From contig NW_003314269.1 in NCBI RefSeq assembly GCF_000143415.4, positions 1,557,544 through 1,621,543 of the forward strand: a stretch of 64,000 bases of DNA, read 5' to 3'. The notes under the pieces were generated by a model. That model was not told where the DNA came from. It was given only the letters and a program-made list of their open reading frames with translations, and searched no databases. The position numbers were made by a program, and so were the translations under genes. Positions 23,381-60,605 of this stretch are shown piece by piece (position 1 is the first letter of the stretch; the number at the start of each line of letters is the position of its first letter). The DNA is from Selaginella moellendorffii (lineage: Eukaryota > Plantae > Lycopodiophyta).

Positions 23381-23395
23381 CTCAGATATGGTAAT

Positions 23396-23399
<4 letters not shown>

Positions 23400-23441
<42 letters not shown>
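23400..23441. repeat. (TA)n microsatellite
   Basis: Perfect TA run directly visible. Confidence 0.98.
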
Positions 23442-23445
<4 letters not shown>

Positions 23446-29803: not shown

Positions 29804-31119
29804 ATGGCCTCGTCTTCCATTGTAACTTCTTACACTTCACAGTGGTTTCCAAAGAAGCTCCCGGGAGCAAACGCCGCGGCAAATAGATTTAAATCGTCGC
29901 GGGTGTTCTTCGTCCAGCCTCGAGCAGCAGCAGCGAGCGATTCTTCAGTGAAAGCGCTATTTTTCGATTGCGATGGCGTTTTGGTTGACACAGAGAAGGA
30001 TGGTCATCGAGTTTCCTTCAATCAGACCTTCAAGGAGGTAAGTTGCAGTTAGAAATGCTCCAAGTTTCAAGGATCTTCCTCGCATTCTTTTCCAAAACAG
30101 AAAGGATTGGACACAGTCTGGGACGTGGAGCTCTACGGAGAATTGCTCAAGATTGGAGGCGGCAAAGAACGGTTTGTCTTGCAAGTTCTTCGTGTTCTAC
30201 ACTGGCAAAGTTTGTTAACTTCGATACTTCCAAGCTTCTTGGCAGCATGACACACTACTTCAATCAAGTTGGATGGCCCGACGCTGCTCCAAAAGACTCC
30301 GCCGAGAGAAAAGCTTTCGTAGCATCGCTGCACAAGCGAAAGACGGACTTGTTCATGGAGCTTATCGATACTAAAGAACTTCCACTTCGTCCAGGAGTTG
30401 CCAGGTGCTTCTTTTTCTTCTTCTTTTGTAACTATCGATGCTATCAGGTTAGTCGACGAAGCACTTGCGAAGAACATCAAGGTCGCCGTTTGTAGCACCT
30501 CAAACGAAAAAGCTGTAAGATCACGCACACTGTTTGGTCGATAATATTTGTGTGCCAACAGGTCTCGGCTATTGTCAATGTTTTGCTCGGTCCTTTGAGA
30601 GCCAGATCCATTTCCATCTTCGCTGGCGATGTAGTCCCTCGCAAAAAACCAGATCCAGTTAAGAAATCCAGTGTTGGAAGGTTTTCTTCCCTGTGGTTGT
30701 GTTCCTGATTGGTCTCGCCTCGCAGGCCATCTATACTTTGGCTGCTACATCTTTCCAAGTTGAGCCTTCGAGGTGCTGCAAAAACTTTTCTCCGCAATCA
30801 CGAGATTTGTTTCTTGATTTTTGCACAAACTTCGTTGATGTTTGATGCAGTTGCGTGGTCATCGAGGACAGTGGGATTGGCCTCCAATCTGCCAAAGCTG
30901 CCGGGATGACTTGCATTGTCACCAAGAGCGTGTATGTAGCACTCTTTCCTTTCTTGTTCTTCGTCTTTGGTATGAAAGTTTTCTCAAGAAATGTTTGTTT
31001 TCTCTTCCGCCAGATATACTGCGGATGAAAACTTCGATCGAGCTGATGCTGTGTTTGATTTCATCGATTTTGGCATTGAGTTTTGTGAGTCCTTGGTGAC
31101 GAGCAAAGTTCTTAGCTGA
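29804..31119 (+). CDS. CBBY: CbbY-like HAD phosphatase (xylulose-1,5-bisphosphate phosphatase family), plastid transit peptide, multi-exon
   Basis: MASSS transit peptide, ALFFDCDGVLVDTEKDGHRVSFN, IGGGKE, AVCSTSNEKAV, KKPDPAIY, CVVIEDSGIG. Ends SKVLS*. Confidence 0.93.
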
Positions 31120-31478
31120 TGAATCGCATTATCTCGTCCTGGTATATGTTTCTTTGTTTAAAACCAAAAACCTTTCTCTTTGGTATCCAGTTATGAGCTC
31201 GTTCGATCAAAGGAATTCACCATATGAGCCAAGCGAATTCACCATATAAGTTCGATCCACCAAACGTATTCATTCCTATCTATTTGATCGTGACTACCAT
31301 ATCAAAGCTAAGCACAAATTCAAAGAATGGCACAAGACATTTTTCTTAAGCGTGCAAAAATTTAAAGTAGGCTCTGCTACCTGGAGAGCGCAGGCTTTGG
31401 ACAAGGAGCGAACCAGGCGCGATGGTCGTTTTACGTGCCAGCGTGGCCAGCCACGTCACCATCTTGTGTAGTTCCTAG
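30803..31478 (+). repeat. Copy A of a ~0.7 kb direct repeat (CbbY last exons + 3' spacer)
   Basis: Colinear with 50532-51228 from AGATTTG... through CACGTCACCA...TGTG..GTTCCTAG. Confidence 0.92.
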
Positions 31479-32351
31479 CAAGAAATGACCTTTGTCACCC
31501 AAGATACAAGCCTGGTTTCCTATGTTCCAGAAAACTCTCGAGAGCTTTAGCGCTCGACAGTGGCACGCTTGAATACTTTGGAGCGCTCAGAAGCTCCGCC
31601 ACTCTGCTGGAGCTCTCACATTCGACGCATTTTAGCTGGTTATAGAAGCTGCTGGATTTGTTCTTCCCAAGGTATGATCTAGAGCTTTAGATCTTTGTTT
31701 TATTCTCTAGATTGGAGCACATGATTGGTTTTAGATACTTATCTAGCTTGCTGTTTTGTACCACAAGGAAGAAACTCATCATCTTTATCAGCAGATCACT
31801 GTTCGGATCCTTTGTAAGTTATTTGTAAACTCCTTATGTGTTTGATATTCATACACGGATCATCTCAAATGCACCGATGCTTCTGGACGGGAATTATGTT
31901 TTCTAACAGAACTTTCTATCGTTTGGAGAGATCACACAGGAGATGGAACTCCGAAGCGTGCCTGTTTCATCTAAAGCTCTAGAATCCCGAAAGGAAGAAA
32001 TCGGCTTAATGTTGAGGGTTTTGACAGCGTCAATAAACACCCTATCCAGATAAGCAAAAGCCCTTATAAGTTTGCGTAAACATACAATTACTAAACTAAA
32101 CTTCAGCTCAAACGTTTCAGCTCAAAAGTTTCAAAAGCTTCAAGTTCAAGGTGCCAAAGATCAACCAAGATGCAAGTAAGGTAAAAGTCTTGCTTTTTCA
32201 AGCTTGTATGTACTGTTTTGGCTCTCACCAAGGCTCTCAATCTCATGCAAAAGAACCTCAAACTGCTGAGAAGCAGCACAAAACTCCACATTTACACATT
32301 CTCACCGGTTGATTCTTTTGCAGGTAGATGGACGTGTAAATTTTGAATGAA

Positions 32352-32645
32352 GTGGCAGCCATTGCCTCTGATGGCGCTTGGAATCTCCTCACAAGCAGGA
32401 GGTGCTGTCCGATAGATTGGATGCACAAATATCCTCTCTTCTGGAAATAAAACATCTCCATGAAGCTCTGGAAGTTTTTATGATTTTGCAAATACTTGTT
32501 TGTGGCAGCCATTGCCTCTGATGGCTGGAACCACTTCACAAGCAGGCGGTAGCTTGGATGCACAAATATCCTCTCTTCTGGAAAGAAAACATCTCCATGA
32601 AGTTCTGGAAGTTTTTATGATTTTGCAAATACTTGTTTGTGACAG
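32352..32645. repeat. ~150 bp tandem duplication (2 copies)
   Basis: GTGGCAGCCATTGCCTCTGATGG...TTGGATGCACAAATATCCTCTCTTCTGGAAA...TTTGCAAATACTTGTTTGTG begins at 32352 and again at 32502. Confidence 0.9.
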
Positions 32646-32849
32646 TGACAACAAAAAGTATAAGAATAAACCTAAAATATTTTAAAACAAAATAAATGGT
32701 AATGGTAAAGTTTGATCTTGTTCCTTGGTGGGAATGGCGCCGCAGATACTGCGCAGGCACCCGTGTAGCCGGGAACTTAGGGTTCTTCACGGCATGTGTC
32801 TAGCAGGAGGTGAGCCATATTCAATCCAGCTTCTACGCGGCCTAAAGAG

Positions 32850-33960
32850 AAAAGCGATGGATCCCAGGCGTATATCGAGGCGCTAGCACTCTCCATCCCG
32901 CTCCATCGATCCTAAAAGATCTTCTCCAGGACGTCATCGATGCCGGATTCCAGCTCCAGCGCCATTCGTGCAAGCTCCGGGGGCGAATGCCGGTGCCTGA
33001 AGCCCAATACCACGCTACCTCGTCAGCATACTTCTCAGCCACTCGCCGCAGTGAGTGGTTTTGCAGTACAGCTGGCAATAACTCTTTGCAGGCTGGGAAT
33101 GACACAAGTGCTGTGCCGCGCTGTTCTTCGTGTTGCCGCGCTCGCCAGTGCTTCTGCACAGCTCTAAGAGAGTGCTTCACCAGGTTGCTCTCGCTACCCG
33201 AGTCATAGCTCTCTCAGTCGATGATGCCAGTGTCACTCACACGTTCTCCCAACACATTGCAGCTCCCCGGGAGTTCCGAGAGAAACAGGCACTGTTACCG
33301 TACGAGGATGCTTTATCAACTTCACTGAGCATCTCTTCCAGGAAGTGGAAGAAATGGTGGCTGTGACGGCCAAGGGCTCGACTTTGGTGGATCCATTTCG
33401 GGGTGCTGAGCATCACAGAGCCCGCCGGGAGCATTTCGGTGGTACCACCATTGCATTTGCTAATCATTGGCGGCAATGGAGACGCCCGTGAAGTAGCTTT
33501 AGCGTGGATGACACCGATTTGGCGCCCGGACGTCAAGCTGCACAGCATGTCATGAGGATCAAACCGCAGGACAATTCAACTTCTACAGTCATGGTCTCGC
33601 AAGCTCGAATAAGATAGAGAATACTCGCGGAGTTCATCCACTTGTGCTCGGCAGGTAAGTCAAAACACTTAAGTTTTCTCTGTAAAGTTCTTACACTTCC
33701 TCTACTCCCAGGTCCAGATAAAGTTCTTACACTTCCTCTACTCCCAGGTCCAGAGAGCGATGGTTCTACTCCTCGAGGAGGGCAGCGCTCTTCCGCGTAA
33801 AAAAAGGGACACTCTTTGGTGCAACCTCGTCTACTTTCCAGCTTCACCACCACTGAGGAACGATCCTTGCAAAGGACGGATGCTGGAGTTGCAGCTATGG
33901 AATCCTGAGATACAAGCTAGTGTAGGCGGGGAAACTTTGGAGGAGGTGAGACCCAAGTGA
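32850..33960 (+). pseudogene. Fragmented lineage-specific gene sequence, paralogous (inverted) to 50100-50531; includes a 36 bp tandem duplication at 33683-33754
   Basis: Shared segments IF.EVEEMVA..AKGSTLV and KVLTLPL.PGPESD.STP.G.Q at both loci. The frames are interrupted and no family was recognised. Confidence 0.5.
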
Positions 33961-34299
33961 AGTTCAGATGGCAGTGGGGTTGAAATGGTGTTCAAGGCGA
34001 GCTCCAAGTTGCGGATGCAGTTCATGTCCCAGATTCTAGCGTCCAATCAACCGGCTACCTAGAGCTCGGTGACGGCTTGCGCGCTCACACCAGTGGAGAT
34101 GCGAACAACACCAACGCGATCCGGCGCGGAGCTGGCACGAAGCTCAAGTTCTCGACGAGCCGGATACTCAAGTGGCGGATCGCAGCTGCGGGAATTGGGA
34201 GTGGCCGCCGTGGGTGGCATCGTCGGATTCGTCTCTCCCGATCAGCACGGTGATCGTGCTCGCCTGGAGATCAAGATCATCCAAAAACCAGAGGAGATG

Positions 34300-35880
34300 G
34301 AGCTGGAGGGGCGCCACAGCGATTCCAGGAATTCTCGGTTTGTAAGTGTTCCTGGAGCAGCGTGAAAGTTCTTCCCGCAAAAATTTGAATTCAAATAAGC
34401 TCACGACCCACACGACGGCCCCGATTAAAGTTCGAGGGTCTCGCTTTCCATGCCGAGCCTGGGTGCCGAACCTGGGCTGGTTGGGGTAAAAGAATAGCTT
34501 GGCAACCCGCGCGTCTTCCAGAGCATCGCAGCTCACAGGGGGCTAGGGTTTCCTGTGGAAAGCCCGGTTGCTGCATCAGAAATGCATTTGATCAATTCGT
34601 GATGTCATCAGGATTTCCAGGTGGGAGAACTTCCAGATCTTCCAACAGCGGATCTTGTTCCGGAGTTAGAGCCAGGACGACAAAGTCGAGCAGCATTCGT
34701 CGAGGTTAGCTTTGCATCTCCTACACTTTGACAAGAGTGTGATGGTTTCCAGGTTTTCCCTGTGAGTGAGGGTGCAACAACATCACATGTCAAGGGAGCG
34801 CACGGAGATTCTACATTAGGCGAGGTATAACATGGCAGATGCATTGACAAAGATTATGATCAATCCGTCATGACTTCTAGGCACGAGAGTATGAGCTTCT
34901 TCCAGATCATCCATCAGCCGCTGCTGTTCCAGAGCTAGAACCGGGAAGACATAGTGGAGAAGCATTCATCCAGGTAGCATCGAATCCCCGACACTTTGTC
35001 AAGAATGCACGTCAATCCATGATGGTCTCCAGGTTTTCCTCATGTGTGAGGGTGCAACAACGTCGCATGTTGAGGGAGCGAACGGAGATTCTACATCAGG
35101 TGAGGTATAGATGATTTAAAGACAATTCGTCATGACATCCAGGAGTTCCAGGCACGAGAGTGTGAGCTGCTTCCACATTTTCCACCAGCCGCTGCTGTTC
35201 CGGAGCTAGAGCCACCACGACAAAGTGTCATCCAGGTAGCATCACATCCCTGAAACTTTAACAACAATGCACAACAACTTGTGATGGTTTCCAGGATTAT
35301 CCTGTGCATGAGGTTGCAACAACGTTGCATGTCAAGGGAGTGTGCAGAGTTTCTACATCAGGTGAGGTATAACAGATGCATTAATTGACAAGATTGTGAT
35401 CAATCTCTGATGGATTTTAGGTTTCTATGTTGGTGTAGCCTTTTTCCACACTAGGGAATGTATCATTACAGAAACAATACAGAGATCACAATGTTAATGC
35501 TTGGTTGAAAAAGTATTTTTATTCTTCACTTTGATCTTATGGTTTATTTTATGGTATATGAGAGTTTTATTGAAGCATTTAAAATGCTATATTAAAGAGA
35601 ATAGTTGGTTTTATTGCAAGCAATGTGTCAAAGAAGCTATTAACCCCATGGTTACCATGGTTAGTGACTCATCTTGTAGGTTTTATAATAAAGTGATAAA
35701 TTAATTCTACTCAAAATTCAAGGTAAATGTTTATTAGAAAATTAGTTGTTAATGAACTATTTTTAAAATGATTACTGGATAAACAACATGAATTATAGTG
35801 GACCTGGGCACCCAATTGAGTTTTACTATAAGATTTAACTAGAAAAGAAGTTCCTGATTTACAGATTAAAAAACATGTAT
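34300..35880 (+). pseudogene. Orphan multi-exon (pseudo)gene with three tandem two-exon modules; continues at ~47050-47420 after the retrotransposon nest
   Basis: Three ~260 bp units at 34610-35370, each AG|..LP..P.A..VPELEP...|GT..AG|.FP..EGATT.HV.G...ST.GE|GTATA. Later exons contain stops. Confidence 0.6.
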
Positions 35881-35900
35881 ATGTGTATGTATGTATATGT

Positions 35901-35906
<6 letters not shown>

Positions 35907-35951
<45 letters not shown>
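35907..35951. repeat. (TA)n microsatellite abutting LTR
   Basis: TA run directly visible, preceded by (TATG)n. Confidence 0.95.
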
Positions 35952-35955
<4 letters not shown>

Positions 35956-38683
35956 ATATAAGTGCATGAAATATATGAAAAGAGAATATTAACCCAAAAA
36001 CCCTAGATTATATACAAAAGTGAGTGGTCTAAATTGAAACTAATTTGATAATTACTAAAATCCCTCTATACTAATATTAATATACAGTATCGTAACCATA
36101 CACTTAGATTTCATATCATCCCTTGCTCTCAGATTGATGGAAAACCATCAAGGTTTTTTCGTGGATGAGCAAAGATTTGAAAAAACATCAGGAGGATGCA
36201 TTAATGGATTTGTAGGTGGTGCCATTTGTTCTAAATCTCTTTGTACAAAGCATTTCAACTATTGCATATACACAATTTCTAAAAGATTGGCTTATTGGAT
36301 ATCATGCCAAATTTCATAAATTTGCAGTCCAACTTGCTGCAACACTTGATATGAACTTTTCCATTGAGCAAGGAGCCCTTTATATAAACCATATATTATA
36401 AAATAGGGAAAATAGATTAACACTAAGTCATCCACTTTATACTCTATAGATGGTTAATAATAGGAGTTGTAGTATCATTGTTGTCCCACTTGTATGCAAC
36501 CTAAGTGTTCGGCAAACTCTACTCAAACAAGTGGAAGAATGCTCACCAAATACTAATCCCACGACCTAGCATCAGCACCCTGTGGCAATTGCAAAGATAA
36601 ACCCAACTTTGTTGGCGGTATTGGATCATGACCATATAAAATATTCAAATGTTAAAAGTTCATGTACTTCACAATTATCCTTTTGAAGGTCTAAATGAGC
36701 CATTCCACCAAACCATTTGACTGTGGATGATAAACACTCGTGAAAATATAGCATATCCCCAACTGAGACATCAAAACGTGAAATGCCTCAACCATAAGTG
36801 TGGGACTATTATCCAAAAGAATATGCTCTAGATAGGATTGCATGAACACCATTCGATTGAGAAGGAAGTATCCAATAATAGTTGCAAATGCGCTAGTAAG
36901 AGCATTAACTTCCACCCAGCAAGTCAAGTAGTCAAAAACAATAATAACATACTCATTATTAGTAGTCGATTATGCAAAAGATCACCAATCAAATGCTACC
37001 AACGGACAGGAAATTTAATTGACTCCAATCGTCCTTCCACAACACGAAGGGGAATATTACGAGTTTGGCACCAAACGTAGCTATACACATACAGGATAAC
37101 ATCATGTCGCATCTCTAGCCAATAAAAAGATTTGTGCAACTTTTCGATCACACGACAATGTTTCATATACCCACCTAGAATAAAAGAATCATAGTAGATA
37201 TGGAGAAAGCATGGAATAAAGATTAAAGGTACCACTAACATAAATGATTATCAAGATCTGACCCCAGAAAATAAAGAAGACTATCCTCAAGGTGACATTA
37301 AGTATGTAAATGTTGAAATGGCAAATTATCAACAAGTAATACAAGATTTTAAAAACTCATTGCAAAGCCTTCGAATCCATGGTTCAATATTTTGAGCCTC
37401 ACGAACTTCGTCAAAAGAAGGTAAATCTTGGTCTGCACCTTGTAGACATTAGACGTTAAATATAGCAACCATCAACAACACGAAATCTTTATCCAAAAAA
37501 TCCATAGATGCTAGAACAACAAGTTTGTCAGAAATATAAAAAGAGAATGAAAAAGGAAAAGGATCTCAAGAAGGGGCATGAGCATTAGCCATACAACTCC
37601 TTGCACAATGAGCAACATCAAAATTATATATTTAAAGTTTCAAAACCCACCGAGCAGTACAACCAACTAGATTCTTTCATTTCTATAATGAAGTAACTGT
37701 AGCATGATATGAGAAACAAAATCCCTAGGCCCCAAAGTGGAGCCGAAAGGGTGCCATGTGGTAGTGGCCGAAGCGAAAGCCAAACAAGCATAACACGTTC
37801 GGATTAAAAGCTTCAACTTGAAAAGGTTGAGAGTGGGAGTGAAACTCCCAATGAAGTGCTCAAGGAACAAACATGAAGTGAGCAATGAGTGAGTCTCTAG
37901 AAAAGGGACACAAGAGGACCAAAACATGACATGTGAAAAAGTCTGAGATGGAGTCCGAGATAGGGGTGGCATTACCTACTTGGATACCTAGTGTGGCTCA
38001 ACAGAACCTCGTTCTAAGCCCATGGCTAGAGCACCCAAAAGTGGAAGGCGGGAAGAGTACCCACGAGGCTCACATAGCCACGATATTCCGAAATGTTGTC
38101 CCAAAGGCCCAGACTATAGAAAGAAAGAGGAGTAATCCTCTGGTGTAGTGACTAAGGATACAACCATGTGGTGAGGAAGTCCCAGAGGACCGTAAGACTT
38201 AGTGGTCAGGCCTGTGGGCCTCGATCTAGTGGCAGTGTTGGCGAACACGGCCATGGGCAGAAAGGGACTTAGTGGGGACTGAAAAAGGGATATTGGGGAA
38301 GGTTATTCCTCATGCCTGCGGGCATCCTAAAGATGCTAAAGAGTGGATCTAGGATGATCACTCATGGACAGATGGCCTAGTCTTTGAGAGATGAAGCTGT
38401 GATGTAGATGGTGTCAGACCACCAGTGTGACCAAGGTGAATAGGCATGGCCTTAGTGTAACGGGCTAATATGTCAGTAGTACCTTGGGGTGTCGGTCATG
38501 GGATCGGACATGTGGAGCACTTGGACCAAGTGCAATGGTTGAGTGGCATGGATGCCATTTTTGGGCTAGTAAGTCCCTAAGTCCAAAATAGGACTTACGG
38601 AGGTTGTGAGTGGGATTCCTCCAAGTGGTCGGAGGTGTGGTTAAGTGATTAAAGTAGAATGGAAAATTTAGTCGCTTACAACT

Positions 38684-38694
38684 TGGTATCAGAG
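38684..38694 (+). promoter_or_regulatory. Primer-binding site complementary to tRNA-iMet
   Basis: TGGTATCAGAG, 3 nt after the LTR terminal CA. Confidence 0.9.
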
Positions 38695-39588
38695 TTGTTC
38701 CTTAGTCCAACTCTTATTAGTGGCCAAGTATATCACCACTTGTATTAGAATTGGAAGGTCTTAGGTATGGACCTATCCTTGAGGAGGAGCATGTCGAGAG
38801 GATATGGCTCTCCATTCAAGTTTATGCATGAATTTGTGTGCAATGTGGTGGATGGAAAAGGGCCAATAAGGGAACGACTTTGGGATCTTGGGAATAGTAT
38901 AAGGGTTTCCTCATAAAGTTGAGGATGTGATCCAGATGAGCGTTTGACTCAGCAAATGGGCTAATGTAGTTGTGGTAAACAACTATAGTTGGGATTACGG
39001 GAAAGATGCAGACTCCGAAACAATAAAGGAGTGATAAGATTACCCTCATATAGTTGAGGCTGGTGCTCATGAATTTGAGACAGGAATTGATGACCATGAG
39101 AGGTCAAATATGGAAAAAGACATAAGTCCTTCAAATAGCTGAAGTTACCTCTAATAAATACTAGAACAACCCAAGGAGTTGGGGTGTACTTAGAGGATGA
39201 GTTGGTATTCTCATCACATGGATAAGTGGTCATAAGGGGCAAAAGGTTGCCCTAAAGAACAAATCAAGTGTTGGAATAACATTTATAATGGTGGTCCTGG
39301 TGAGTAAGACATGAATACAAGAAGTTGTATTCCAATGAGTTGGCACCTCAAAAGTAAGACTTTATAGGTTGGGGGATTAGAAAAAGTCCAAAAGGTTGAA
39401 TGACTTAAGTGGAGTCAAAGAATGGTCCTAAAGGACTAATGGAAGCATTTGGACTGAGGTGTAATGTGCCCCACAAAGGATGGGGAGGATCATAAGATCC
39501 TTGTATGAGAACAGTGGGTATCTCATGGGTGGCAGAATGTGCCATACTAAAGTCGTGGGAAAGGTGTTCCCAGAAGAAGCAACTTTGT

Positions 39589-39688
39589 NNNNNNNNNNNN
39601 NNNNNNNNNNNNNNNNNNNNNNNNNNNNNNNNNNNNNNNNNNNNNNNNNNNNNNNNNNNNNNNNNNNNNNNNNNNNNNNNNNNNNNNN
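39589..39688. other. Assembly gap (100 N)
   Basis: Run of N. The true length is unknown. Confidence 1.
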
Positions 39689-42600
39689 AAATGTGCCAAG
39701 GTGTGATACCTTGAGGTTATGTTGATGGGTTCATGAAACCCTTTGCCAAGGAAATCCCAATGGAAATGGGAATGGCATAGCCTAAGCTAGAAGGCATGTG
39801 GTAGAGTGTGGTGACCCAGATAATAATGGAGGTGTGGAAGCACCAACAATGAGTTGTAGGACTTGATAATTATGAAGCAACTAAGCAAGAGGTGTAAGGT
39901 AATTGGTTAAACGGGTAGAAAGTAGCTACTCAAGACTTCTTAATGGCATAAAAAAGTTAGATATACCCTTATCGGGGATAAATTGCTTATATTGCAATAT
40001 AATAAGTCAATGTCGTAAAAGGAAATGCTCATTGTCAAGAAGGTTATTATTGGGACACCCAAATATTCTAGAACACCAAAAGGTGGTGTTTAGTGTCGCG
40101 AGGGCAATAGATAAAGCCCAAGAGACTAAGTCCCTTGCGAATGATGGATAGAAGGTGCTATCCAAACGTCCAAGGTTGCGGAGATAGGAGAAATCTCTCT
40201 ACTCGAATTGGACAAAGCCAAAAAGGGATTTTGGCAAGGCTAATGATGGGCATATAAAGGCTCATAAGTAACAACGTTAATTCTGGTGTATGGGATTACT
40301 AAGTGAGCATACCCGGATTGAGGAACCACTCCCTAGATTGTTAGGTAAGTTTATCCCCATGAATATTTGCTAAGGCATGGTAGAAAGTGCAAAACTATCC
40401 TCCTAGTTTAAAGGAGAATAATTGAAGGAAACATATGAGGCCAAAAAGTAAAGTAGTAAAAGGATGGAACTGAACTATAAAAATCGAAGGGCATAACCAA
40501 GGGTGGTTATGCGAGTTGGGAGTGGAGATTCAAGTGGGTGCTCGAGCGGGTTATTATTAACGACCGCGATGCTATAGAAAGTCTAAAATGTGGAATTATC
40601 CATATTAGACTATATGGTGATTAAGGAGCTTGCAAAAAGGAGAAGCCTTAGCAAGCTAAGGAATAAAGTTCCTTGAAGGTTCCTAAAGAAAATTCTAGGT
40701 AGATAAGTACTTAGAAAGCCAAGTGTAAATGGTTCCTAGAGCGCGTGAAATTGGAGTGGTGTAGCAGAAACGTGGTCTTGAAGCTTGCCATGAGGCGAGG
40801 CTATCAAGGTTGGGGAAGTAGTTCTGGAGTGTTTAAAGAGAGGGCTTTGAACGAAAATCGATGATTAAAGACTTTCACACTTATGCATGAACCATGTTAT
40901 AATGGCCGGATGACTTGCTAGATGAGATTGGCAAGTCAGGGGAACAAATACCCTAGTTGAAGGTGCTACCTTCAAAAAGGGTGGCCCATGGGGCCAAGTA
41001 TGGAGGAGTCCATGCATAATCACGGACTTGTCAAGTGAGAAGACTTGGCAGTGTAGAGGAACTAAGTTCCTAAGCTGTGATTTGTAGCGTGCTTTAACTA
41101 TAAGTTAGTGCACTGGCGTGGGGAGTCACGCCAGGCATCTTGGATGATGCCTTCCGTAAATGCATATATAGAGGTTGGGTTCGAGTCCTGACCCTCTAGT
41201 GCTTGGGTTTGAGTCCCAACTCACTAGGGCGCAGTAATAGTTTGAAATATGAGAACACTCATTTTTCAGTGGTCATGGGCTCTCAGTAAGGAGGCTGGCT
41301 TAGGCACACTACCAAGCGGGGGATGCCCTGGAGTCATGATACACGATTAGATTACTTAGTGTGGCTTGACAAATCTAACTTGAACACTTTGGTGCAAGTG
41401 GCACCAAGAATGTGGTGAATGAAATGGGGATACCCAATCTCAGTTGCTATGGACCCTTAGCCAAAAGGGCTAGCTTGGGTGCACCGCTAAGTGTGGGGGA
41501 TGCCCCCAGGGTCATGGTGAACAACTTAAAGGTCTAGAGGACTTAGTACCTATTGGCAAACTTGTTAAAGTGCCAAGGTTAGATCACTAGGTGATCTTAG
41601 GACTAAAACAAGGACAAAGTCCTTGTGAAGTTAACGGATAAAGTTTTTAGTTCAAAGTGTTGATTTAAACTATTGATGATGGTGTGGCTTGGTCAAGGTG
41701 ACCAAGTGGGAAGAACACCTAAGAGAAATGATCTGTGGCAATGTGATGGCATAGTGAGTTCGAAAGGATACCTCAAGAATGGAGGTAGTGATATGATGTT
41801 GCTAGGTGCAACAATCAAGGATAAAAGCAAAAAACTAGTGGCTAAGAAAAGAGCCATGAGAATCATGGGAAAGAATCCAAAAGGCAAAATTAGGCCAGGA
41901 ATACTAATGTGTTAGGTGCTAACAAATTGTGGGAAAGGCAATGTGTTTCCAAGGATGGATTCCCAATTGCTCCGATTTGGCGAAAATGGAAGCTCTATGG
42001 GAGGGAGCAGTAAGGTAGCCAAATGATAGGGCCATAGATAGCTCTAGCACAAAGTATGATAACTGGAACTTAGTGCCTAAGGTGGCACAAAATAGAAGAG
42101 AGAATGATGGTGCCTTCAAATAGAGAACTTCCTAAGATGGGGAAGTGGAGTTGCACAATATGTGCAATGCAAGGTGTCGGAGACACTTAAGAAATTGACT
42201 TTGAGAAGTCAAAAGTAAAGGTTCCAAAGTGCAAAAGTTATATCGATAGAAACTGAGACTACTTGAGAAGGAGTAGTGGATTGAGATAGAGACAGTGTCT
42301 TTAATAGGTTTAGTGAGGACTAAACCAATAAACGAAGAGAACCACCACAAGTGGTTGAATAATTCTCTAAGTTGGAGAGACTATATTCCTTAGAGGATGG
42401 GCAAGGCATGGTGAGCCTTCAGTATCAAACCATTGACAAATGATGGAAGGGCCAAGGATGGAAACAGTAATACAAGTTGGTATTACTTTATAAAATAGTT
42501 TATCGTTCGATGAGGACATCAAACTTTGTTTATGGGTGGTGGAGTTGTGAGAAACAAAATCCCTAGGCCCCAAAGTGGAGCCGAAAGGGCGCCATGTGGT

Positions 42601-42777
42601 TGTGGCCAAAGCGAAAGCCAAACAAGTGTAACACGTTTGGACTAAAAGCTCCGACTTGAAAAGGTCGAAAGTGGGAGTGAAACTCCCAATGAAGTGCTTG
42701 AGAAACAAGCATGAAACGAGTAATGAGTGAGTCTCTAGAAAAAGGACACAAGAGGACCAAAACATGACACGTGAAAG

Positions 42778-43085
42778 AGTCTGAGATGAAGTCTGAGATG
42801 GACCCGAGATGGACCCGAGATGGACCCGAGATGGAGTCCAAGATGGAGTCCGAGATGGACATGAGATGGACCCGAGATGGACCCCAGATAGACCCGAGAT
42901 GGAGTCCGAGATGGAGTCTGAGATGGACCTAAGATGGACCCGAGATGAAGTCCAAGATGGAGTCCGAGATGGAGTTCGAGATGGAGTTCGAGTCTGAGAT
43001 GGAGTCCGAGATGGAACCGGGACCGAGACCGAGACCGAGATCGAGTCCAAGTCTAAGACTAGGACCGAGACCGAGTCCGAGTCTG
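42778..43085 (+). repeat. Minisatellite of GGA(C/GT)CCGAGAT / GACCGA units inside the 3' LTR
   Basis: About 20 imperfect 11-12 bp units followed by 6 bp GACCGA units. Only ~2 units are present in the 5' LTR. Confidence 0.9.
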
Positions 43086-46000
43086 AATACTAATACAGGA
43101 AGTTGGGTGAAAGCCCAAAGCAATCGTCCCTTGGGGGGGGGGGGCTGCAGGGGGTTCCAAAAGTATAGTAGGGAGAATATGGGGGTTGGAGCCCAATGGA
43201 GGCAATTTGACCAGGAGAGGCCAGGAAGGCCCAGGAAGGCCATGCCCAGTGTTAGGTGATGAGCTGACCACTGGGAAGTCCAAAACTAGAGTGAATACGG
43301 ACTAACAATGGGGTAACTTGGCGAAGTGTTCAAGAGCCGGCTCTAGTTCCCCCAGGAGATTAAATGGTTGATGCTCCCAGTCCAAGTGTGGGTGGCACTA
43401 CTTACTTGGATACCTGGTGTGGCTCAATAGAACCTCGCTCTAAGCCCATGGCTAGAGCACCCAAAGGTGGAAGGCGGGGAGAGTACCCATGAGGCTCACA
43501 TAAGGCCACAGTATTCCGAAATGTTGTCCCAAAGGCCCAGACTATGAAAAGAAAGAGGAGTAGTCCTCTGGTGTAGTGACCAAAGATACAGCCGTGTGGT
43601 GAGGAAGTCCCAGAGGATCATGGGATTTAGTGGTCGGGCATGTGGGCCTCGATCTAGTGGCAATGTTGGTGAACACGGCCATGGGTAGAAAGGGACTTGG
43701 TGGGGACCAAAAAAGGGATATTGGGGAAGGCTATTCCTCATGCCTGCGGGCATCCTAAGGATGCTAGGGAGTGGATCTGGGATGATCACTCATGGACGGA
43801 TGGCTCAGTCTTTGAGAGACGGGGCTGTGATGTAGATGGTGTCAGACCATCGGTATGACCAAAGTGAATAGGCATGGCTTTAGTGTAGCGGGCTAATATG
43901 TCAGTAGTACCTTGGGGTGTCAGTCATGGGATCGGACATGTGAAGCACTTGGACCAAGTGCAATGGTTGAGTGGCATGGATGCCATTTTTGGGGCTAGTA
44001 AGTCCCTAAGTCCAAAATAGGACTTACGGAGTTTGTGAGTGGGATTCCTCCAAAATCACGGGAAAAATGTAGACTCCGAAACAATAAAGGAGTCACAAAA
44101 TCACCTTCATATAGTTGAGGCTAATGCTCATGAATTTAAGACAGGAATTGATGACCATGGGAGGTCAACCAAATGTGTGTATAAACCAGATGAAAGATAA
44201 CATTGACAACTTCAGCAATGCTTGCAATGGTGTGGTGCAATTAGAAAAATGATCAGCAAAACGATCGAGATATTACACTTTACCTAGGAAGCACAGCACA
44301 TGATTCACACTTTAGAGTAAGGAACTTTCGAACAGCCACAAGTTTGTCAGGATTAGCTTGCAAATTGTCATAAAAAATACAGTACCCAAGATAAGTTATG
44401 TCCTTGGACTTAAACACACATTTTGACCGCTTCAACTTTAAACCAACTTCTTATAACTGATCCAACACTTTATGAATATCAGGGTCATGCTCTTCTTATA
44501 TCCCCTCCGAGTGGATTACGACATCATTAATGAAATTAACAATCATCTCAGGCATATTGCAAAGAACCTCATCCTTATTAAAGCATTGTTCAAACCAAAT
44601 GGCATCACCAAGAACTCATAAAAACCAAACAATATATGAAAAACAGTCTTAGAAATATCTTCTTCAGCCATCAGTACTTCCCAGTACTTAGAAGCAACAT
44701 CGAACTTGGTAAACCAATAACTTCTCTTTAGACAATCCAAGAGATCAGCATTGTGAAGAAGAGGGTAAACATCTAAGATTGTTACTTCATTTAATGGATA
44801 ATAATTGATATATAAATGAATATTCCTATCAGATTTTGTCACAAGATGAAGTTCACATGCCTAAAGACTCTACGACTTTCGAATAACTCTTTTTTCAAAC
44901 ATTTCTTTCACGTTTGCATGTAAAATCTTGATTTCTTTAGGTCATTAATGACGAATAGAAACCTTGATTGAATGAACATCCCTAATTGGAATAGGATGAC
45001 ATGTTGCAATTTTGGCCCCAAATGATAAATCAAATTCAAAGAGATGGGCATATTCCTTCATGAGTCAGTCAACCACTGCAACATAAAAACCGTTAGAGGG
45101 ATTAGAAAAAGAAATAGAGGAATAAAATAAAAACTTAGGAGGAAGTAAAATGGAGACAAAAGTGATGGAAGCAAAGGTAAAATCAAAGGGATGAAAAGTT
45201 ATAAAAGTGAGAGGAATGGAAGAAATATCAAGAAGTATGAAACAAGAAGAAGAAACCTTGAAGTCATACTTGGTATGATTGTGCCACAACCAATCCATAC
45301 TAAAGATAAGGTCAAAAGCTTAACTCAACACCACTCGTAATGACTGTAGCTCAAGCTCAAGATCACCCATATGCACAATTAGCTTTGCCTCATCTCGTGC
45401 ACATGTATATATACAGCCATTACCATAAAGAATGAAAATTGGTTTTGCCATATAATGCAAATGTAGACAGCAATGTGTGTCAATAAACCAAGCAATAAAA
45501 GATAAACTCAAACTTGTATCAACTAATATAGAGAGAATAATAAGAAACCTCTTGTTATAAAAATGAGTTTGGAAAGTAAACATTGGATGAACTGGTGCCG
45601 AGTTAACCTTTTAATAATACTTCCGAAAGATATATGAAGGGTCACTAACTTATTTGCACAAGGTCCTTCTTTTACTCGCACGACTCTTCATTTCTCAAAT
45701 ACATCTCAATGTCTAGACTTTCCACTATAGCAACACTAATAGAATATTGTTAACACTAAGGTCTCCACCCAAGAAATGGAAGTCGCTAATCTGGAAAATG
45801 CCGACAACACCGATAAGTGTGACCAACTTCATCACACGCCCAAGGATGAACATCACAGCCATGACCACGTCCTTGCCCTTTGTCTTTAAATTTGGGCAGC
45901 AGTAGCATCAACTTCTATTAGAACAAGACTATCTCTCACAAGAATTGGAGCTAAAACACATGTAGTGAGAAGTGAAAGAAGTGACATCTTATAATATTGT

Positions 46001-47814
46001 GCTAGACAAAGGGCATCAACAAAGGTGGCTGGAGTAAATGCATGCACAAGTCTTACAAAATCTTGATGAAATGTTAGCCACAACATTACTAACTTGATCC
46101 GCTTTGACATATTTGGCTCCACACGAAGTAAGAGGCTTTAAAAACAAATGCTAAACTCCATCATTGACTCAAATGGCATTTGATAAAAATTATGCAATTG
46201 TTAGAAGGCATTATCATAATCATTAGTATGTCCAAATGTGTATTTGAAAATGTCTGGAAAAATACTCTAATTTGCACAAATGGTTGCTCTCAAACTATTA
46301 TACCACTGCAGCATCGTCCCTTTAAGACACGTAGGAAACTCATGCAAATGTTAAGCATCATCCTAGAAATGATATATGGCAATCATCGTGAAGTGATTGA
46401 ACCAATGGTATATATCATCCCCAAGATTCTCATGAATAAACTCTAGCCGAACGCAAGGATTGGCAGTAATAGCAAAAAGAGTTGTACCACACACTGTGAA
46501 TGTTGTTATCAATTAAGTCTTATTGTTTAATTACAATAACATAGCATTAAGCAATTGCACCAATTGCTACTCTAAAGTCAAAGGAGGAAGACGTTACTGC
46601 TTTGCCATGAAGATGAAGGAAAAGGAAAGAGTAAAAAATAAGAAGTTGAGAAAAATAATAAAAAAAGGGGAGATCTAGAGAATACAAAAATTAGATCTAA
46701 ACCAAAATCCCAAAAACAATAAGAAAAGAGAGATCTAAACAATGTAAAAATTAAATTTAACCCAAAATCCCAAATTCTAACACTCCTCAGGGACAATCAA
46801 AATTGCTCCTCAACTCGACCAATATGAGTGCATGGAATATAGAAAAAGAATACAAGAAATGTGTATATCAATTAGCCTAAAAACCTTAATTTATATACAG
46901 AAGAGAATGATCCGGATTAAAACCAATTTAATGGCTACCAAAGTCCCACTACACTAATATTAATATATAGCATTGTAACTGTACAATTTGTACATCACAG
47001 TTATAATTTATATTTATATTTATTTTATAGTGGATATTAACCCTCACCAAAATTAATTGATATTAAAGGTGGTTATTTCCCAGAGTTTGCTGAGTGTAAA
47101 GTGATAGAGTGGTCTACAAAAGCTAAAGGTTAGCTAATTTTAAATTTTGATTATCCACTAATAAGTTTTTTATTAAGGAGCTATGTTTTCAAGTGGAATT
47201 AAAATCTATCAAAGGGGACAAACTTATGACACATGGCATTGTCTTGCGTACCAGAGAAATCACTTTGCAGTAATATATTCAATTTTATAAATATCTTTGT
47301 CAATACATTTGTGTAGGTAATATGGGAGAGATTAATTTCTCAACCCAGTACTGCATGAGGTGGGGAATGCGGCTATTATTCCAAGCAATGTCTTGGGATT
47401 TGAGTGCCTAGGTGATCTATTTGATCTCTTACAGTTTCTTTCTAGTGTACAACATAATTAAATTCTCATTTTATTAGTCTTTTGCTAAATATTTGTGGAT
47501 TTGCTCCATCCTCTCGCGAGCATGAGCCACGGGTTTGATGGCTCCTACAAGGGACCTCTACCTATTGAGGGGAAAGAAGATATAACTTGGGACCAGTCAC
47601 CGAGCACCGCCACTCTACAAAGGAACAGCTTCTCCTCTTGTTTGTCCCTGGAGATTTGCATCCGAGGATTCGGCCGCACAAACGGGGTGTTTTGCCTTCT
47701 CTCCCACCCAAGAACAGGTACGTGCTTCTACTCTCTTACAGCTTTCGGTTGGAAGCTAGAGCTTTCTTCCTCTACTTCTTCTACTGGTTATTACGAGCTG
47801 TGGAGGCAGCAAAT

Positions 47815-48026
47815 GGTGCTGTTTTCTCCGGTTGACAAACAACTGCTACGTCCAAACTTTGATGCACGACTTCGCACCGTTGATCCTCAGCTTTTGAAAG
47901 CCGAGTGGAGTCCAATCCAAGGTGCTGTTTTCTCCGGTTGACAAACAACTGCTACGTCCGAACTTTGATGCACGACTTTGCAGCGTTGATCCTCAGCTTT
48001 TGAAAGCCGAGTGGAGTCCAATCCAA
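47815..48026. repeat. 106 bp tandem duplication (2 copies)
   Basis: GGTGCTGTTTTCTCCGGTTGACAAACAAC...GAGTCCAATCCAA starts at 47815 and at 47921. Confidence 0.95.
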
Positions 48027-49328
48027 GTTACCGGACAGCACCTCCTGCTTATACTTCTCAGATGAGGTTTTTCCCAGTGTCTCTTCCATGAGATCGGTGA
48101 GATCCTGTCCAACAAAACGGATTTGCATACTTGAAAAAGCAAGGCTTTTACCTCGTCACTCCACATTTGCATCTTAAGGTTGTGGATGATCTTTGGCATG
48201 GCAAAAGTTCCTTTCGTGCGAAGATTTCGCAATAACACTTTCCCTGCTGTTTCATAAGAGATCTAGGTAAACCTTTTCTTTGGAAGACGTTCTCGCGACT
48301 TCCACCAGCCTAGGTAAGGCTCGATAGCGTCCACAGCCAAGCTGTAGAGCGAGAGGAGCCACATGCATAGAGTTGCCTCGTACAGTAGCTAGAAACGAAA
48401 AACAAGACCACTGCTGTAGAAAACCAGCTGAGTCGAGAGCACAGCATCACGAACCTGAATGTACTGCTGTGCAGATATCAAGGGAGTCAGGAGTTTCTGG
48501 TGAGGTATACGCTCTCTATGACATGATCCTAGGTGGCAGTAGTGCCACTCCGCTGATCCAAGTTTAGGCTAGAGGCATGTCTCTTGATCATGTATATATA
48601 GCTATGATGTTATATTCAGACGATCATCCTTGTCTATCATAGCTTCTGCATATCTCTTCAGTTTCACGCCCTCAAGTTGTACAAACATGGAATTCACTCC
48701 TAGCGGAGTAGCCAAAGTGCTGACGGCTGTTGGTATCACGCAGCTTGGATGAGAAGGATGAAAAAACAAATCATTCAGTGCCGGCTGTGTTCGTGGATGA
48801 GCGCTTCCAAACAACTAAGAAGTAAGACAACTTCTCTCGAAAAGTCTCAAAACGAGCTACGTGATAAGACGGTCAGAATCTTGCAAGCTTTTTTTCTTGG
48901 GGAGCAAACTGGGGAAAAGAAAAAACAAGAGACTTAGTGCCAGTGCCAGTCAGCAAATTCTCACCTCAAGCAAAGCCGGCAAATCTCCTCGGGAGAAAAT
49001 TCTTCATCGTGAAACAATGCATCATGCTTTATCCTGACATGGATATTAAGGCGGGTCTTTCTTCCAAAAAACAAAAAGCCATGCTTCCAAAAGCTATGAA
49101 ATTACCAGAGACCATTTCATCTCTCATGTCTAGCTTCGTCTCCTAGGAGTTGGAAGTCTTGACAAGAGTGTCTGCAACACCAGCGGTAAAAAACGGCACA
49201 GAAAAACGTTATCCCGTATAAGAGGTGAACAGTCAACCTGAGGCGTGAACCAGGAATCGCAAGTGATGGCTAAAAACCGCCAACCTGAGAAACCCTAACC
49301 TAAGTAAGAAGAAAGTGACTAGATTGCC

Positions 49329-50096
49329 ATGAGCGCCTCGAAGAAGCTGTTGAGAGCTTGCAAGACTACGCATGGCAGAATCTATTCGAAGAAGAGGGAC
49401 CTGGCTCTCTACAAGAGAGGCCCCTTTCACTGCGCGTCTGGAGTGGAAGCGGAAGAATACGAGAGGTTAGTGGATGATGATGTGGTCCGGCGCTACGGGT
49501 TACAGTATGACCCTCGCGGAGGCGTGGTGAGCATCTGCGGCGACAACACCGGCGTGCACGCATCGATCAAGGGTTGGGTCTCTGCTGTTCTTCAAAACGA
49601 GGTGTTCGACATGGGCATCCCGACTTTCAAGACAGTTTGCCACTGGACAAACATGCTCTTGAGCCTCCCAAACGGCATGAAGAAGATGGTGGACAACGTC
49701 CTCTACACGAGGAAGCCCGAGGTCAGCTCCATGGAGATTCCTATCGTGGTTGTGGAGGTGGCCTTCTACAATGAATCCTTCGACAAGCTCAAGGAAAACG
49801 TGAGGGAGATCATGAAGCTGGACACGGTGACGCTGGCTGCCGGCTTGAGCGTCAACTACGACGAGGGGAGTGGGGGGGTGTGGTTTCAGGCATGCATCGG
49901 ATATGCCGGAGAGCTCAGAGAGTATAGTCGGCTGGAAGGGCAGGAGTGCTTTGTTGCATCCACGGATACGATATTCAAGGGTGTGCCGGATTTGCCCACG
50001 AACATCCGGAATGAGTTTCGGTTCCCCCTTGGACAAGTTGTGGAGTTTGCAAGCTGTGCGGGCTTCATGCGAAGCAAGAAGGACATGTTTTGGTAG
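49329..50096 (+). CDS. Intronless Uma2/DUF820-like PD-(D/E)XK restriction-endonuclease-fold protein (255 aa)
   Basis: Order of motifs: helix with His (TGVHASIKGWV), KKMVD (PD-equivalent), PIVVVEVAFYNESFDKLKENV (P.hVVEVA..ES...L), then hydrophobic strands. This matches Uma2/Crinkler-type REase domains by pattern. A telo-box AAACCCTAA lies ~40 bp upstream. Confidence 0.7.
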   Translation: MSASKKLLRACKTTHGRIYSKKRDLALYKRGPFHCASGVEAEEYERLVDDDVVRRYGLQYDPRGGVVSICGDNTGVHASIKGWVSAVLQNEVFDMGIPTFKTVCHWTNMLLSLPNGMKKMVDNVLYTRKPEVSSMEIPIVVVEVAFYNESFDKLKENVREIMKLDTVTLAAGLSVNYDEGSGGVWFQACIGYAGELREYSRLEGQECFVASTDTIFKGVPDLPTNIRNEFRFPLGQVVEFASCAGFMRSKKDMFW

Positions 50097-50531
50097 ATGC
50101 AAAGGAAAAGCTAGCTGCCTTCCTAGAGGTGTGGAACTATCACTCTCTGGGCCTGGAAATAGAGGAAGGGTAAGAACTTTGGACTGGAAGCTTGCAAAAG
50201 AAATAGCTAAAGTTGTTTTACTCCTTGTTCGATGAACTCTGCGATTGTTCACTGGGTTTGTTTCGAGTCCAGCTCGAAAAACTCGCAACAGTCATGGTGG
50301 CTTCATGCTGTTGACAGAAACTATCTTGCTGGTTTAATCTTCTTCTTCTTCCATGGATCATGCTGACATCGAAGTTAGCGAGCTCGATCTCGACTTCACG
50401 GCTTTCTCCTTCATCGACGATTTGAGCGGATAGCAAAGGCAACGGCTCTCGGCTGTGTCCGAGTGATGCTCACCACCTCACCAAAGTCGAGCCTTTGGCC
50501 GCCAGAGCGACCATTTCTTCCACTTCCTCGA

Positions 50532-51228
50532 AGATTTGTTTTGTCTTGATATTTGCATAAACTTCGTTGATGTTTGATCCAGTTGCGTGGTCATCGAGGA
50601 CAGTAGGATTGGCCTCCAAGCTGCCAAAGCTGCCAAAGCTGCCGGGATGACTTGCATTGTCACCAAGAGCGTGTATGTAGCACTCTTTCATTTCTTGTCC
50701 TTCGTCTTTGGTATGGAGATATACTACGGATGAAAACTTCGATCGAGCTGATCCCGTGTTTGATTTCATCGATTTTGGCATTGAGTTTTGCTAGTCCATG
50801 GTGACGAGCAAAGTTCTTAGCTGATGAATCGCAGTATCTCATCCTGGTATGTGTTTCTCTGTCTTTTGTTTAAAACCAAAAACCTTTCTCTTTGTTATCC
50901 GGTTTTGAGCTCGATCGATCAAAGGAGATCACCATTTGAGCGAAACGAATTCACCATATAAGCTCGATCGATCAAACGTATTCATTCCTATCTATTTCAT
51001 CGTGACTACCATATCAAAGCTAAGCAAAAATTCAAAGACAATGGGACAAGAGAAGCAAGCACGCGATTTTCTCGAAGAAAGCATGAAAAAAATTTAAAGT
51101 AGGCCAATCTGCTGGAGAGCGCAGGCTTTGGACAAGTAGCGCCACACAAAAGGCGATGGTCGTTTTAAACGTGCCAGCGTGGCCATACACGTCACCAACA
51201 TGTGGCATTTTGTGTACAGTTCCTAGGG
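50532..51228 (+). pseudogene. Copy B of the direct repeat: non-functional CbbY 3' fragment plus spacer acting as upstream region of the SLH gene
   Basis: Matches 30803-31478 but has an extra GCTGCCAAA, a ~38 bp intron deletion and a premature TAG (TTTTGCTAG). Confidence 0.9.
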
Positions 51229-51414
51229 TTTGTGCAGGGGTTTGAGAGAGGAGCTCTCGATCGACCAAGGCGCTGGCTTAGATCCGGTGAGTCTCCCTCC
51301 TTTCTTGCATCGCCGCGACTGAATTGCTGGTGCGCGGCGCTCGCAGATGTGTTTGTAGCTCGCTCGAGCTCCCGTTTCCTCTTGCATCCGATTCCTCCTC
51401 TTCCTTTCCGAAAT

Positions 51415-54400: not shown

Positions 54401-54727
54401 AAACCTCCAATGCACGGCATCCTGGTGAAAGCCGACGAGTTCAAAGGGAGGAGCTTGCAGTTCCTGAGAGAAGCGATGCAAACTTCCAACCAGAGGCTGA
54501 GCGTGGCGCAGCAGAGGATGCTGGAGTCCATGGAAAAGATCGCGAGGAAGGCCGGAGAAGTCCGAGATAACACTTTCTTCGTGGTGAGGAAACGCGCCGG
54601 CGAGGCCCAGAGCGCTGCTGCGTCGATGGCGTCCGAGATCTCGGCGCTGGTAGCCAAGAACACGAACAAGCTCGCGGATGGTTGCAAGGGAAGCGCTGAG
54701 AAGCTCGCTCAGATCTTCAAGCCCTGA
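51415..54727 (+). CDS. Plastid membrane protein with transit peptide, TM helix, acidic low-complexity region, SLH (S-layer homology)-like domains and C-terminal coiled coil
   Basis: MAVALPG transit peptide, DSYAGW, APVVDHGQEQALSALQSLKV, CTRREYARWLV, AFDDVSPEDPDFPFIQGLAEAGLI, FGYTRLFQPHKPVT.GQAAVAL and WAEEEAKKA.AHAKVLEEARKRWE are motifs of the conserved land-plant SLH family. Confidence 0.85.
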
Positions 54728-54863
54728 AGAAGCCACAAGAATGCGCGAAGACGAAACCGAGGTTTTGAAAGAAATAAGTGTTTGACGGCCCGGATGTGGC
54801 ACTGGAGCCAACGGCTGGGATCGGCCCCTTGTTGAGCTAAACTTCCTCTTCAAGGTTTTGAAA

Positions 54864-54872
54864 AACCCTAAA
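54864..54872 (+). promoter_or_regulatory. Telo-box (AAACCCTAA) immediately upstream of Ku80; similar boxes at ~4792, ~9231, ~49289, ~51226 and ~58037
   Basis: Exact or near-exact plant telo-box motifs close to start codons. Confidence 0.5.

Positions 54873-58088: not shown

Positions 58089-60605
<2,517 letters not shown>

Follow-up and report, generated by a model that had tools for sequence, protein, structure and literature searches.

The DNA analysed here, called the window in the following, is a 64,000-nucleotide stretch of the lycophyte Selaginella moellendorffii (RefSeq assembly GCF_000143415.4, contig NW_003314269.1, positions 1,557,544 to 1,621,543 of the forward strand) and is part of scaffold GL377573.1 in assembly GCA_000143415.2. 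We focused on an interval of approximately 19 kb, referred to as the island, which is bracketed by two direct copies of a segment of about 0.7 kb and lies between two annotated genes on the plus strand. The gene on its left (29804-31119) encodes a HAD-family (CbbY-like) protein of 286 amino acids with Pfam matches to Hydrolase and HAD_2, and its last two exons lie inside the left copy. The gene on its right (51415-54727) encodes an SLH-type protein of 942 amino acids, in which the SLH-type region is C-terminal. Between them, SELMODRAFT_408251 (49329-50794, plus strand) is annotated as a gene for a protein of 309 amino acids. The annotated gene lists covered 31120-37214 and 39329-49328 between the CbbY gene and SELMODRAFT_408251, and no gene was called within either of these two ranges.

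The left copy (copy A, 30803-31478) and the right copy (copy B, 50532-51226) are both on the plus strand, colinear over the whole length, and both complete. A preliminary description, made from the letters of this stretch, had already reported colinear copies at these places, and the alignment bore this out, with the second copy ending at 51226 rather than at 51228. In a four-way alignment that included the corresponding copies of the second haplotype described below, the substitution difference between copy A and copy B was 0.084-0.088 (Kimura two-parameter distance, K2P, 0.089-0.093), and several indels were found besides. Chance cannot reasonably account for a match of approximately 680 bp at this identity, and the pair is the sole long direct repeat in the window that does not belong to a transposable element. 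Copy A covers the 3' part of a CbbY intron and the final two CbbY exons with the stop codon, after which 359 bp of intergenic DNA follow. As had been proposed, the annotated HAD/CbbY gene takes its final two exons from this copy. Copy B is contiguous with the promoter of the SLH-type gene. It had been regarded as decayed, and it does carry an in-frame 9-bp triplication, a 36-bp intron deletion in which the AG is retained, an earlier stop, and further indels. Nevertheless, its two CbbY-derived exons stay open, with three added residues, four residue changes, and a shortened intron, and the annotators used both of them as the 3' exons of SELMODRAFT_408251. Since these exons differ from those of CbbY mostly by amino-acid changes, they may be decaying.

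A telo-box on the minus strand (51224-51231) extends across the right boundary of copy B, and the SLH-type start codon follows 184 bp further on. The statement that copy B keeps the telo-box and the region upstream of the SLH-type gene is therefore correct. At the end of copy A, just the first bases of this telo-box are present. Because the motif is continuous only at the copy B/SLH side, we regard this side as the ancestral one, and the arrangement suggests that it represents the ancestral promoter. The inserted core DNA follows directly on copy A and is directly followed by copy B. If one copy and the interval were removed, approximately 546 bp would be left from the CbbY stop codon to the SLH start codon, which is normal in this compact genome and agrees with the compact junction that had been predicted.

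The second member of the SELMODRAFT_408251 cluster, SELMODRAFT_402624, lies on scaffold GL377565.1 of the same assembly. The gene order at this locus was identical to that in the window from the PPR gene through the poly(A)-binding gene, and the flanks on GL377573.1 and GL377565.1 differed by 1.4-2.4% substitutions. The GL377565.1 locus was thus taken as the other haplotype of the sequenced plant; the S. moellendorffii assembly is a Sanger-era assembly that contains both haplotypes. The other haplotype carries the duplication as well, at locus positions 6627-7311 and 11204-11888. Its left junction is the same as in the window, and its right junction is identical in sequence. In the four-way alignment, the substitution difference between the haplotypes was 0.034 for copy A and 0.016 for copy B, and the A copies grouped with A copies and the B copies with B copies. 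This grouping, together with the larger difference between A and B, indicates that the duplication predates the haplotype split, and the duplication is several times older than that split. If the long terminal repeat (LTR) rate used in PMC5750206 were applied, a K2P of 0.09 would correspond to a few million years.

The two haplotypes differ strongly in what lies between the copies. In the other haplotype, the copies are only 3.9 kb apart, compared to approximately 19 kb in the window. Two large pieces of the window are missing there. One extends from 31717 to approximately 35570 (3.85 kb) and has about 64 bp in its place; the other is 35874-46999, which comprises a microsatellite expansion and a nest of retrotransposons, so that window position 35873 is joined directly to 47002 in the other haplotype. 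Smaller indels were found besides. Hence, approximately 15 of the 19 kb are later growth specific to the window haplotype, and the reported 19-kb island holds as measured in the window haplotype, whereas the same interval is just 3.9 kb in the other one. The preliminary description had proposed to look for an empty CbbY-SLH site in the other haplotype. The core insert and both copies were present there instead, so that no presence/absence polymorphism of the whole unit is seen between the haplotypes. In the shared non-coding parts of the island (35697-35873 and 47002-49284, compared with locus positions 7746-9818), the haplotypes differed by 4-22% with many indels, compared to 1.4-2.4% for the flanking genes.

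The core shared by both haplotypes, approximately 3.9 kb, is a mosaic of one lineage-restricted orphan gene, a fragment of a repeat family, and a truncated fragment of another sequence. Its left end (31479-31716) has the same junction in both haplotypes. It is followed, beyond the 3.85-kb segment of the window haplotype, by AT-rich sequence common to both haplotypes, which passes into a TA-rich microsatellite expansion at 35874-35957 (35571-35957 in all). The region upstream of the orphan gene (47000-49328, approximately 2.3 kb) diverges fast, and no test gave a sign of coding in it; a 106-bp tandem duplication (47815-48027) and a telo-box (49290-49297) lie within this region. At the right end of the core lies a fragment of about 430 bp (50104-50534) of a sequence that we call X. 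An inverted partial copy of this right end is found at 33270-33840 (minus strand), inside the 3.85-kb segment. This relative is similar to within a few bases of the copy B junction and then runs on in an open frame, and the open reading frame (ORF) spanning it had no protein relatives. Judged by this relative, the right end of the core is a truncation point and not a natural terminus. Approximately 3-5 bases (AGA/GAT) are shared at the right junction, as judged against an X relative that is 9-15% diverged. A continuation of X was not found beyond copy B. This truncated fragment without a continuation on the far side, together with the continuous telo-box, suggests that the core is an insert.

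A tandem array with units of approximately 270-290 bp was also observed outside the island, at 22005-23366, together with a TA microsatellite at 23394-23445 and a further repeat at 23604-23773. The array region (21900-23800) is related to the AT-rich pieces of the island (35396-35960 and 47002-47170) and to positions 7746-8071 of the other-haplotype locus. The array and the AT-rich pieces probably belong to one dispersed repeat family.

The orphan gene begins with an ORF of 255 codons (49329-50096), which is 100% identical to the first 254 residues of SELMODRAFT_408251. In that gene model, splicing joins the orphan ORF with the two exons of copy B that derive from CbbY, so that the predicted product is a chimera. 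The same chimeric model is annotated in the other haplotype as SELMODRAFT_402624 (locus positions 10001-11466). No mention of the locus tags of the chimeric gene was found in the literature. The telo-box at 49290-49297 lies 32 bp before the start codon of the orphan ORF. The ORF is intact in both alleles, which differ by 4 synonymous and 6 non-synonymous changes; the ratio of non-synonymous to synonymous polymorphism (pN/pS) was 0.42, a value that has low power with 10 differences.

A profile search against 1.84 billion representatives returned a small orphan family, which consists of the two alleles, the paralog SELMODRAFT_411838 (49% identity), the 104-residue fragment SELMODRAFT_419860, and one unplaced protein from Logan. 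A fragment related to the orphan ORF elsewhere showed 78% nucleotide identity. Two ankyrin-repeat matches of the profile were taken as spurious. The Logan protein is the only relative outside the S. moellendorffii assembly; it has 180 residues, is encoded at positions 2366-2908 of a 6.4-kb contig of ERR10900198, and matched the family profile at E=2e-9. This 6.4-kb contig had no further similarity to the window. The paralog loci are ordinary gene neighbourhoods and have nothing but the ORF in common with the island. At the one paralog locus tested, that of SELMODRAFT_411838 on GL377581.1, no flanking direct repeats of at least 60 bp were found. Just upstream of SELMODRAFT_411838, at locus positions 7144-9194, we observed fragments that resemble the LTR of the nested element and the reverse transcriptase (RT) region of the outer element of the retrotransposon nest described below, oriented the other way round from those in the window. 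Their presence there is probably a coincidence between abundant families.

The orphan ORF had been described as a nuclease. However, no resemblance to a PD-(D/E)XK or Uma2-like nuclease family was found, since 49329-50096 had neither a Pfam match at E<=10 nor a match in the PDB, whether searched as a single sequence or as the family profile, and its AlphaFold2 model, built from a 4-sequence alignment, had a predicted local distance difference test score (pLDDT) of 36.5 and was unusable. The nuclease assignment was therefore dropped. The family does have an invariant D and, after it, an invariant E in a hydrophobic strand; the likeness of this motif to that of the PD-(D/E)XK nucleases is loose.

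The later growth of the window haplotype is mainly due to a nest of two LTR elements, 11.0 kb in total. The outer element (35958-46999, minus strand) is a degenerate Ty3/gypsy-like LTR retrotransposon that is absent from the other haplotype. Its ends (35958-36135 and 46835-46999) are LTR-like, approximately 170 bp long, and about 76% identical; this is a weak pair, with a divergence of about 24-32%. An Integrase_H2C2 fragment at 36999-37247 scored 27.2 bits, over the cut-off of 25.5, and an RVT_1 fragment at 44546-44860 scored 25.8 bits, under the cut-off of 29.6, and is a weak match. RT comes before integrase on the minus strand, which is the expected coding order of the element. The sequence GTTAT, present at 35953-35957 and again at 47000-47004, is a candidate 5-bp target-site duplication. 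The pol region is split by one nested insertion and carries many stops and frameshifts, and its longest open stretch is 105 codons. The LTR pair, the domain order, the candidate target-site duplication, and the empty site in the other haplotype together place the outer element among the Ty3/gypsy retrotransposons.

The nested element (37710-44168, plus strand) has LTRs at 37710-39107 and 42548-44168, which are approximately 90-92% identical over the aligned blocks (8-10% diverged) and differ by large indels. The ratio of transitions to transversions between them was 93:36 in a gappy alignment. The transition excess hints at methylation-driven decay. The internal part of this element gave no protein domain match, and a clear target-site duplication was not seen. 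The LTR pairs of both elements are far more diverged than the haplotypes are, though the elements are absent from the other haplotype. Dating of the insertions by LTR divergence was thus rejected, because the LTRs exceed the haplotype divergence and show a transition excess. The high divergence of the island and of the LTRs could result from deep coalescence of a non-recombining structural heterozygote; alternatively, the elements could have been lost from the other haplotype.

The window's only run of N, an assembly gap at 39589-39688, lies approximately 480 bp into the internal region of the nested element. Since the two sides of the gap do not overlap and no long open frame reaches both, continuity and frame across it cannot be established; no gene depends on either. 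The order and orientation across the gap are backed by the nested LTRs, which stand in the same orientation on either side, by the minus-strand order of the outer integrase on the left and RT on the right, and by the other haplotype, which joins 35873 to 47002. The scaffold join across the gap is sound, and the island length is an estimate.

Subtracting the 11.0-kb nest from the island leaves about 8 kb in the window haplotype, in agreement with the preliminary description. This remainder includes the haplotype-specific segment of approximately 3.85 kb (31717-35570), which is absent from the other haplotype. It contains tandem repeats of 137 and 262 bp and ORFs without relatives. No Pfam match, no terminal inverted repeats, and no target-site duplication were found in it.

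The preliminary description had proposed that the island may be an undescribed mobile unit that carries cargo, integrated by a single crossover of a circular DNA in the manner of Campbell. All ORFs of at least 60 amino acids in the non-retrotransposon part of the island were scanned against Pfam at E<=0.01, and four of them were scanned again at E<=10. No Pfam family at all was matched in these scans, and thus none of a recombinase, integrase, transposase, or nuclease. The island has no terminal inverted repeats, since the end-to-end inverted alignment scored 14 and shuffled sequence scored 16 on average. No tRNA or other Rfam family was found in the window. Helitron-like ends were examined by eye and rejected; the left end lacks an initial TC, and the base that follows the putative 3' end is not a fitting one. 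No further copy of the unit with a flanking duplication of its own was found when the orphan paralog loci were tested at the protein level.

Taken together, we favour the reading, at somewhat better than even confidence, that the locus records a single, non-recurrent duplication-insertion in the short CbbY-SLH intergenic region, which is older than the haplotype split and was followed by later transposable element insertions. Since both copies are complete and the insert lies exactly between them, the duplication and the insertion were most likely one event. Two routes may be envisaged. A break with ends staggered by approximately 0.68 kb could have had both its ends filled in and been sealed with captured DNA inside; alternatively, a replication fork could have switched template and re-entered 0.68 kb upstream. 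By either route, the target segment would end up as a direct repeat flanking a mosaic insert of approximately 3-4 kb. The pieces of this insert would be the orphan gene with its promoter-like telo-box, a piece of the dispersed AT-rich repeat, and the truncated fragment of another sequence. Either route would agree with the few bases shared at the right junction. In plants, work cited in PMC7464560 has traced tandem duplications to adjacent single-strand breaks or to patch-mediated break repair. The growth from approximately 3.9 to approximately 19 kb took place in the window haplotype only. It consists of the Ty3/gypsy-like insertion, which was hit by the second LTR element, and of the 3.85-kb segment, the microsatellite expansion, and smaller indels.

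Several points weigh against this reading. The donor loci of the inserted pieces were not identified. The microhomology at the right junction is short and is judged against a copy that is 9-15% diverged. The polarity rests on the telo-box and on the truncation, without an outgroup that shows an empty CbbY-SLH site. A stagger of 0.68 kb is long compared to experimentally induced cases. Moreover, sequence by itself cannot tell staggered-break repair, template switching, and homologous integration of a circle from one another.

The duplication-insertion was weighed against four other explanations. If the orphan gene had always stood between CbbY and the SLH-type gene, the 0.7-kb copy of the CbbY 3' end and the DNA downstream of it could be later filler, pasted into a break approximately 3.2 kb downstream and immediately before the SLH promoter, and no island would have been inserted at all. 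Such a course needs two new junctions, the same number as the insertion does, it leaves normal intergenic distances (approximately 610 bp from the orphan stop to the SLH start), and it suits an orphan gene that looks settled, with a telo-box of its own, intact in both haplotypes, and with the pN/pS given above. However, the telo-box at 51224-51231 would then have to be created by chance at the junction, and an extra deletion would be needed because X ends exactly at copy B and has no continuation on the far side; we consider this explanation rather unlikely. A plain tandem duplication of 0.68 kb could also have come first, with unrelated DNA inserted between the copies afterwards. Tandem duplications are common in S. 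moellendorffii (PMC5750206), and later unrelated insertions into the interval are certain. Still, the first insertion would need to have hit the head-to-tail junction within a few bases of approximately 1.36 kb and left both copies complete, and the core insert and its junctions were already common to both haplotypes, so that we give this sequence of events little credence.

The integration proposed in the preliminary description, in which a circle with the orphan gene and a captured host segment entered by a single crossover as an undescribed cargo-carrying mobile unit, explains the direct repeat of the homology segment on both sides exactly, and the D...E motif of the orphan family, with its loose likeness to PD-(D/E)XK nucleases, would suit it. 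Against it stand the absence of a recombinase, integrase, or nuclease domain, of defined termini, and of a tRNA target, the truncated right end, and the lack of any other copy of the unit, the paralogs sharing the ORF only and having no flanking repeats. Both haplotypes carry the core, so that there is no presence/absence polymorphism of the unit, and an extra prior event, the acquisition of this very host segment by the circle, would be required. Because about 15 of the 19 kb are later growth and because neither an enzyme domain nor termini or a tRNA were found, both the mobile unit and the Campbell-like circle are considered very unlikely. The truncated right end, and orphan relatives that share no other island sequence and lack flanking direct repeats, speak against the mobile unit in the same way. 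The narrower possibility that the core of approximately 3-4 kb was once an extrachromosomal circle with the CbbY-SLH segment, which re-entered by homologous recombination, is also highly improbable; if it were true, it would be a eukaryotic 'Campbell' insertion without an enzyme that moved a gene and made a chimeric one. An artefact, with the duplication produced by a collapse of haplotypes or repeats or by a faulty scaffold join at the gap, could appeal to the gap inside the interval and to a Sanger-era assembly that contains both haplotypes. Nevertheless, both junctions lie within contigs at a great distance from the gap, the 8-9% difference between the copies greatly exceeds that between the haplotypes, and in the other haplotype the sequences on either side of the gap-bearing nest adjoin each other. 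The duplication and its junctions were, in addition, assembled independently on the other scaffold, GL377565.1, in a 21-kb locus without an N run. The mis-assembly that the preliminary description had named as fatal to its case is contradicted by the same copies and junctions there, and an artefact is barely conceivable.

The interpretation in the preliminary description thus stands in part. The duplication does bracket the insert exactly at the head-to-tail junction, and the copy B/SLH side looks ancestral; the mobile unit was not supported. The alternative that it offered, widely staggered cuts, is compatible with the duplication-insertion that we favour. The result also comes close to the outcome that it had set against its own proposal, namely that the island parts never co-occur elsewhere and that unrelated insertions make up most of the length.

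Upstream of the island, a PPR gene (25400-27214, plus strand) and a rhodanese gene (28472-29774, minus strand) are annotated. The rhodanese and CbbY genes (28472-29774 and 29804-31119) stand head to head, with their coding regions approximately 30 bp apart, and likewise in the other haplotype. Between the PPR and rhodanese genes, a 287-codon ORF (27459-28322) in a stretch of 31% GC gave a B_lectin match below threshold; at the corresponding place of the other haplotype (locus positions 3767-4120), a gene for a 117-residue B_lectin protein is annotated, which is not the case in the window haplotype. Downstream of the SLH-type gene follow a Ku-family gene that is Ku80-like (54892-57716, plus strand; Pfam Ku_N, Ku, and Ku_PK_bind) and a poly(A)-binding-type gene (58089-60605, plus strand). 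Telo-boxes at 49290-49297, 51224-51231, and 54863-54870 were observed 22-184 bp before three successive start codons, those of the orphan, SLH-type, and Ku80 genes. Homologues of the SLH-type protein were found in Diphasiastrum and in a liverwort, and the liverwort protein has a Pfam SLH match. The liverwort locus of this homologue had no neighbours informative for synteny.

On reading the second haplotype, the 'island with giant flanking repeats' dissolves into an old, small duplication-insertion that was inflated by retrotransposons in one haplotype. The locus offers a clean natural case, in a lycophyte, of inserted DNA flanked by a 0.68-kb duplication of its target, and it has left, in both haplotypes, a predicted chimera of a lineage-restricted orphan ORF and duplicated exons of a conserved plastid-type phosphatase gene. 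As a structural variant it is of an ordinary kind, its chimeric gene being a side effect of modest interest, and it opens no long-standing question.

Compared with known systems, the island resembles Campbell-type integration of circular elements, as known from prophages, integrative elements, and yeast integrative plasmids, and also Starships, which are large eukaryotic transposons with cargo, in having direct repeats around an insert with an unrelated gene. It differs from them in having no recombinase, no attachment-site-like termini, and no other copies, and in its truncated right end. The haplotype variation driven by LTR elements in S. lepidophylla (PMC5750206) is similar in that one haplotype here carries an 11-kb gypsy-type nest which is missing cleanly from its counterpart, but the LTR pairs (8-10% and approximately 24%) are much more diverged than the haplotypes. 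Chimeric genes from partial duplication, as known from Drosophila and plants, offer a parallel to the joining of CbbY 3' exons to an unrelated upstream ORF, although the fusion here is a gene prediction and the differences in the copied exons are mostly amino-acid-changing. Fork stalling and template switching and microhomology-mediated break-induced replication (FoSTeS/MMBIR) yield a mosaic insert in which one fragment ends abruptly at the junction, with the re-copied target behind it, as is found here; the microhomology at this locus is weakly documented and the donor loci are not identified. The locus also resembles the duplications produced by break repair in plants, on which work is listed in PMC7464560. 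The 0.68-kb segment and the insert of 3-4 kb exceed the typical cases, and the mechanism is read here from an event millions of years old. Such duplications share with this locus direct copies of a single contiguous target segment in head-to-tail order, additional DNA precisely where the copies meet, possible short shared bases at a junction, and a one-off occurrence at one locus without an element-encoded enzyme.

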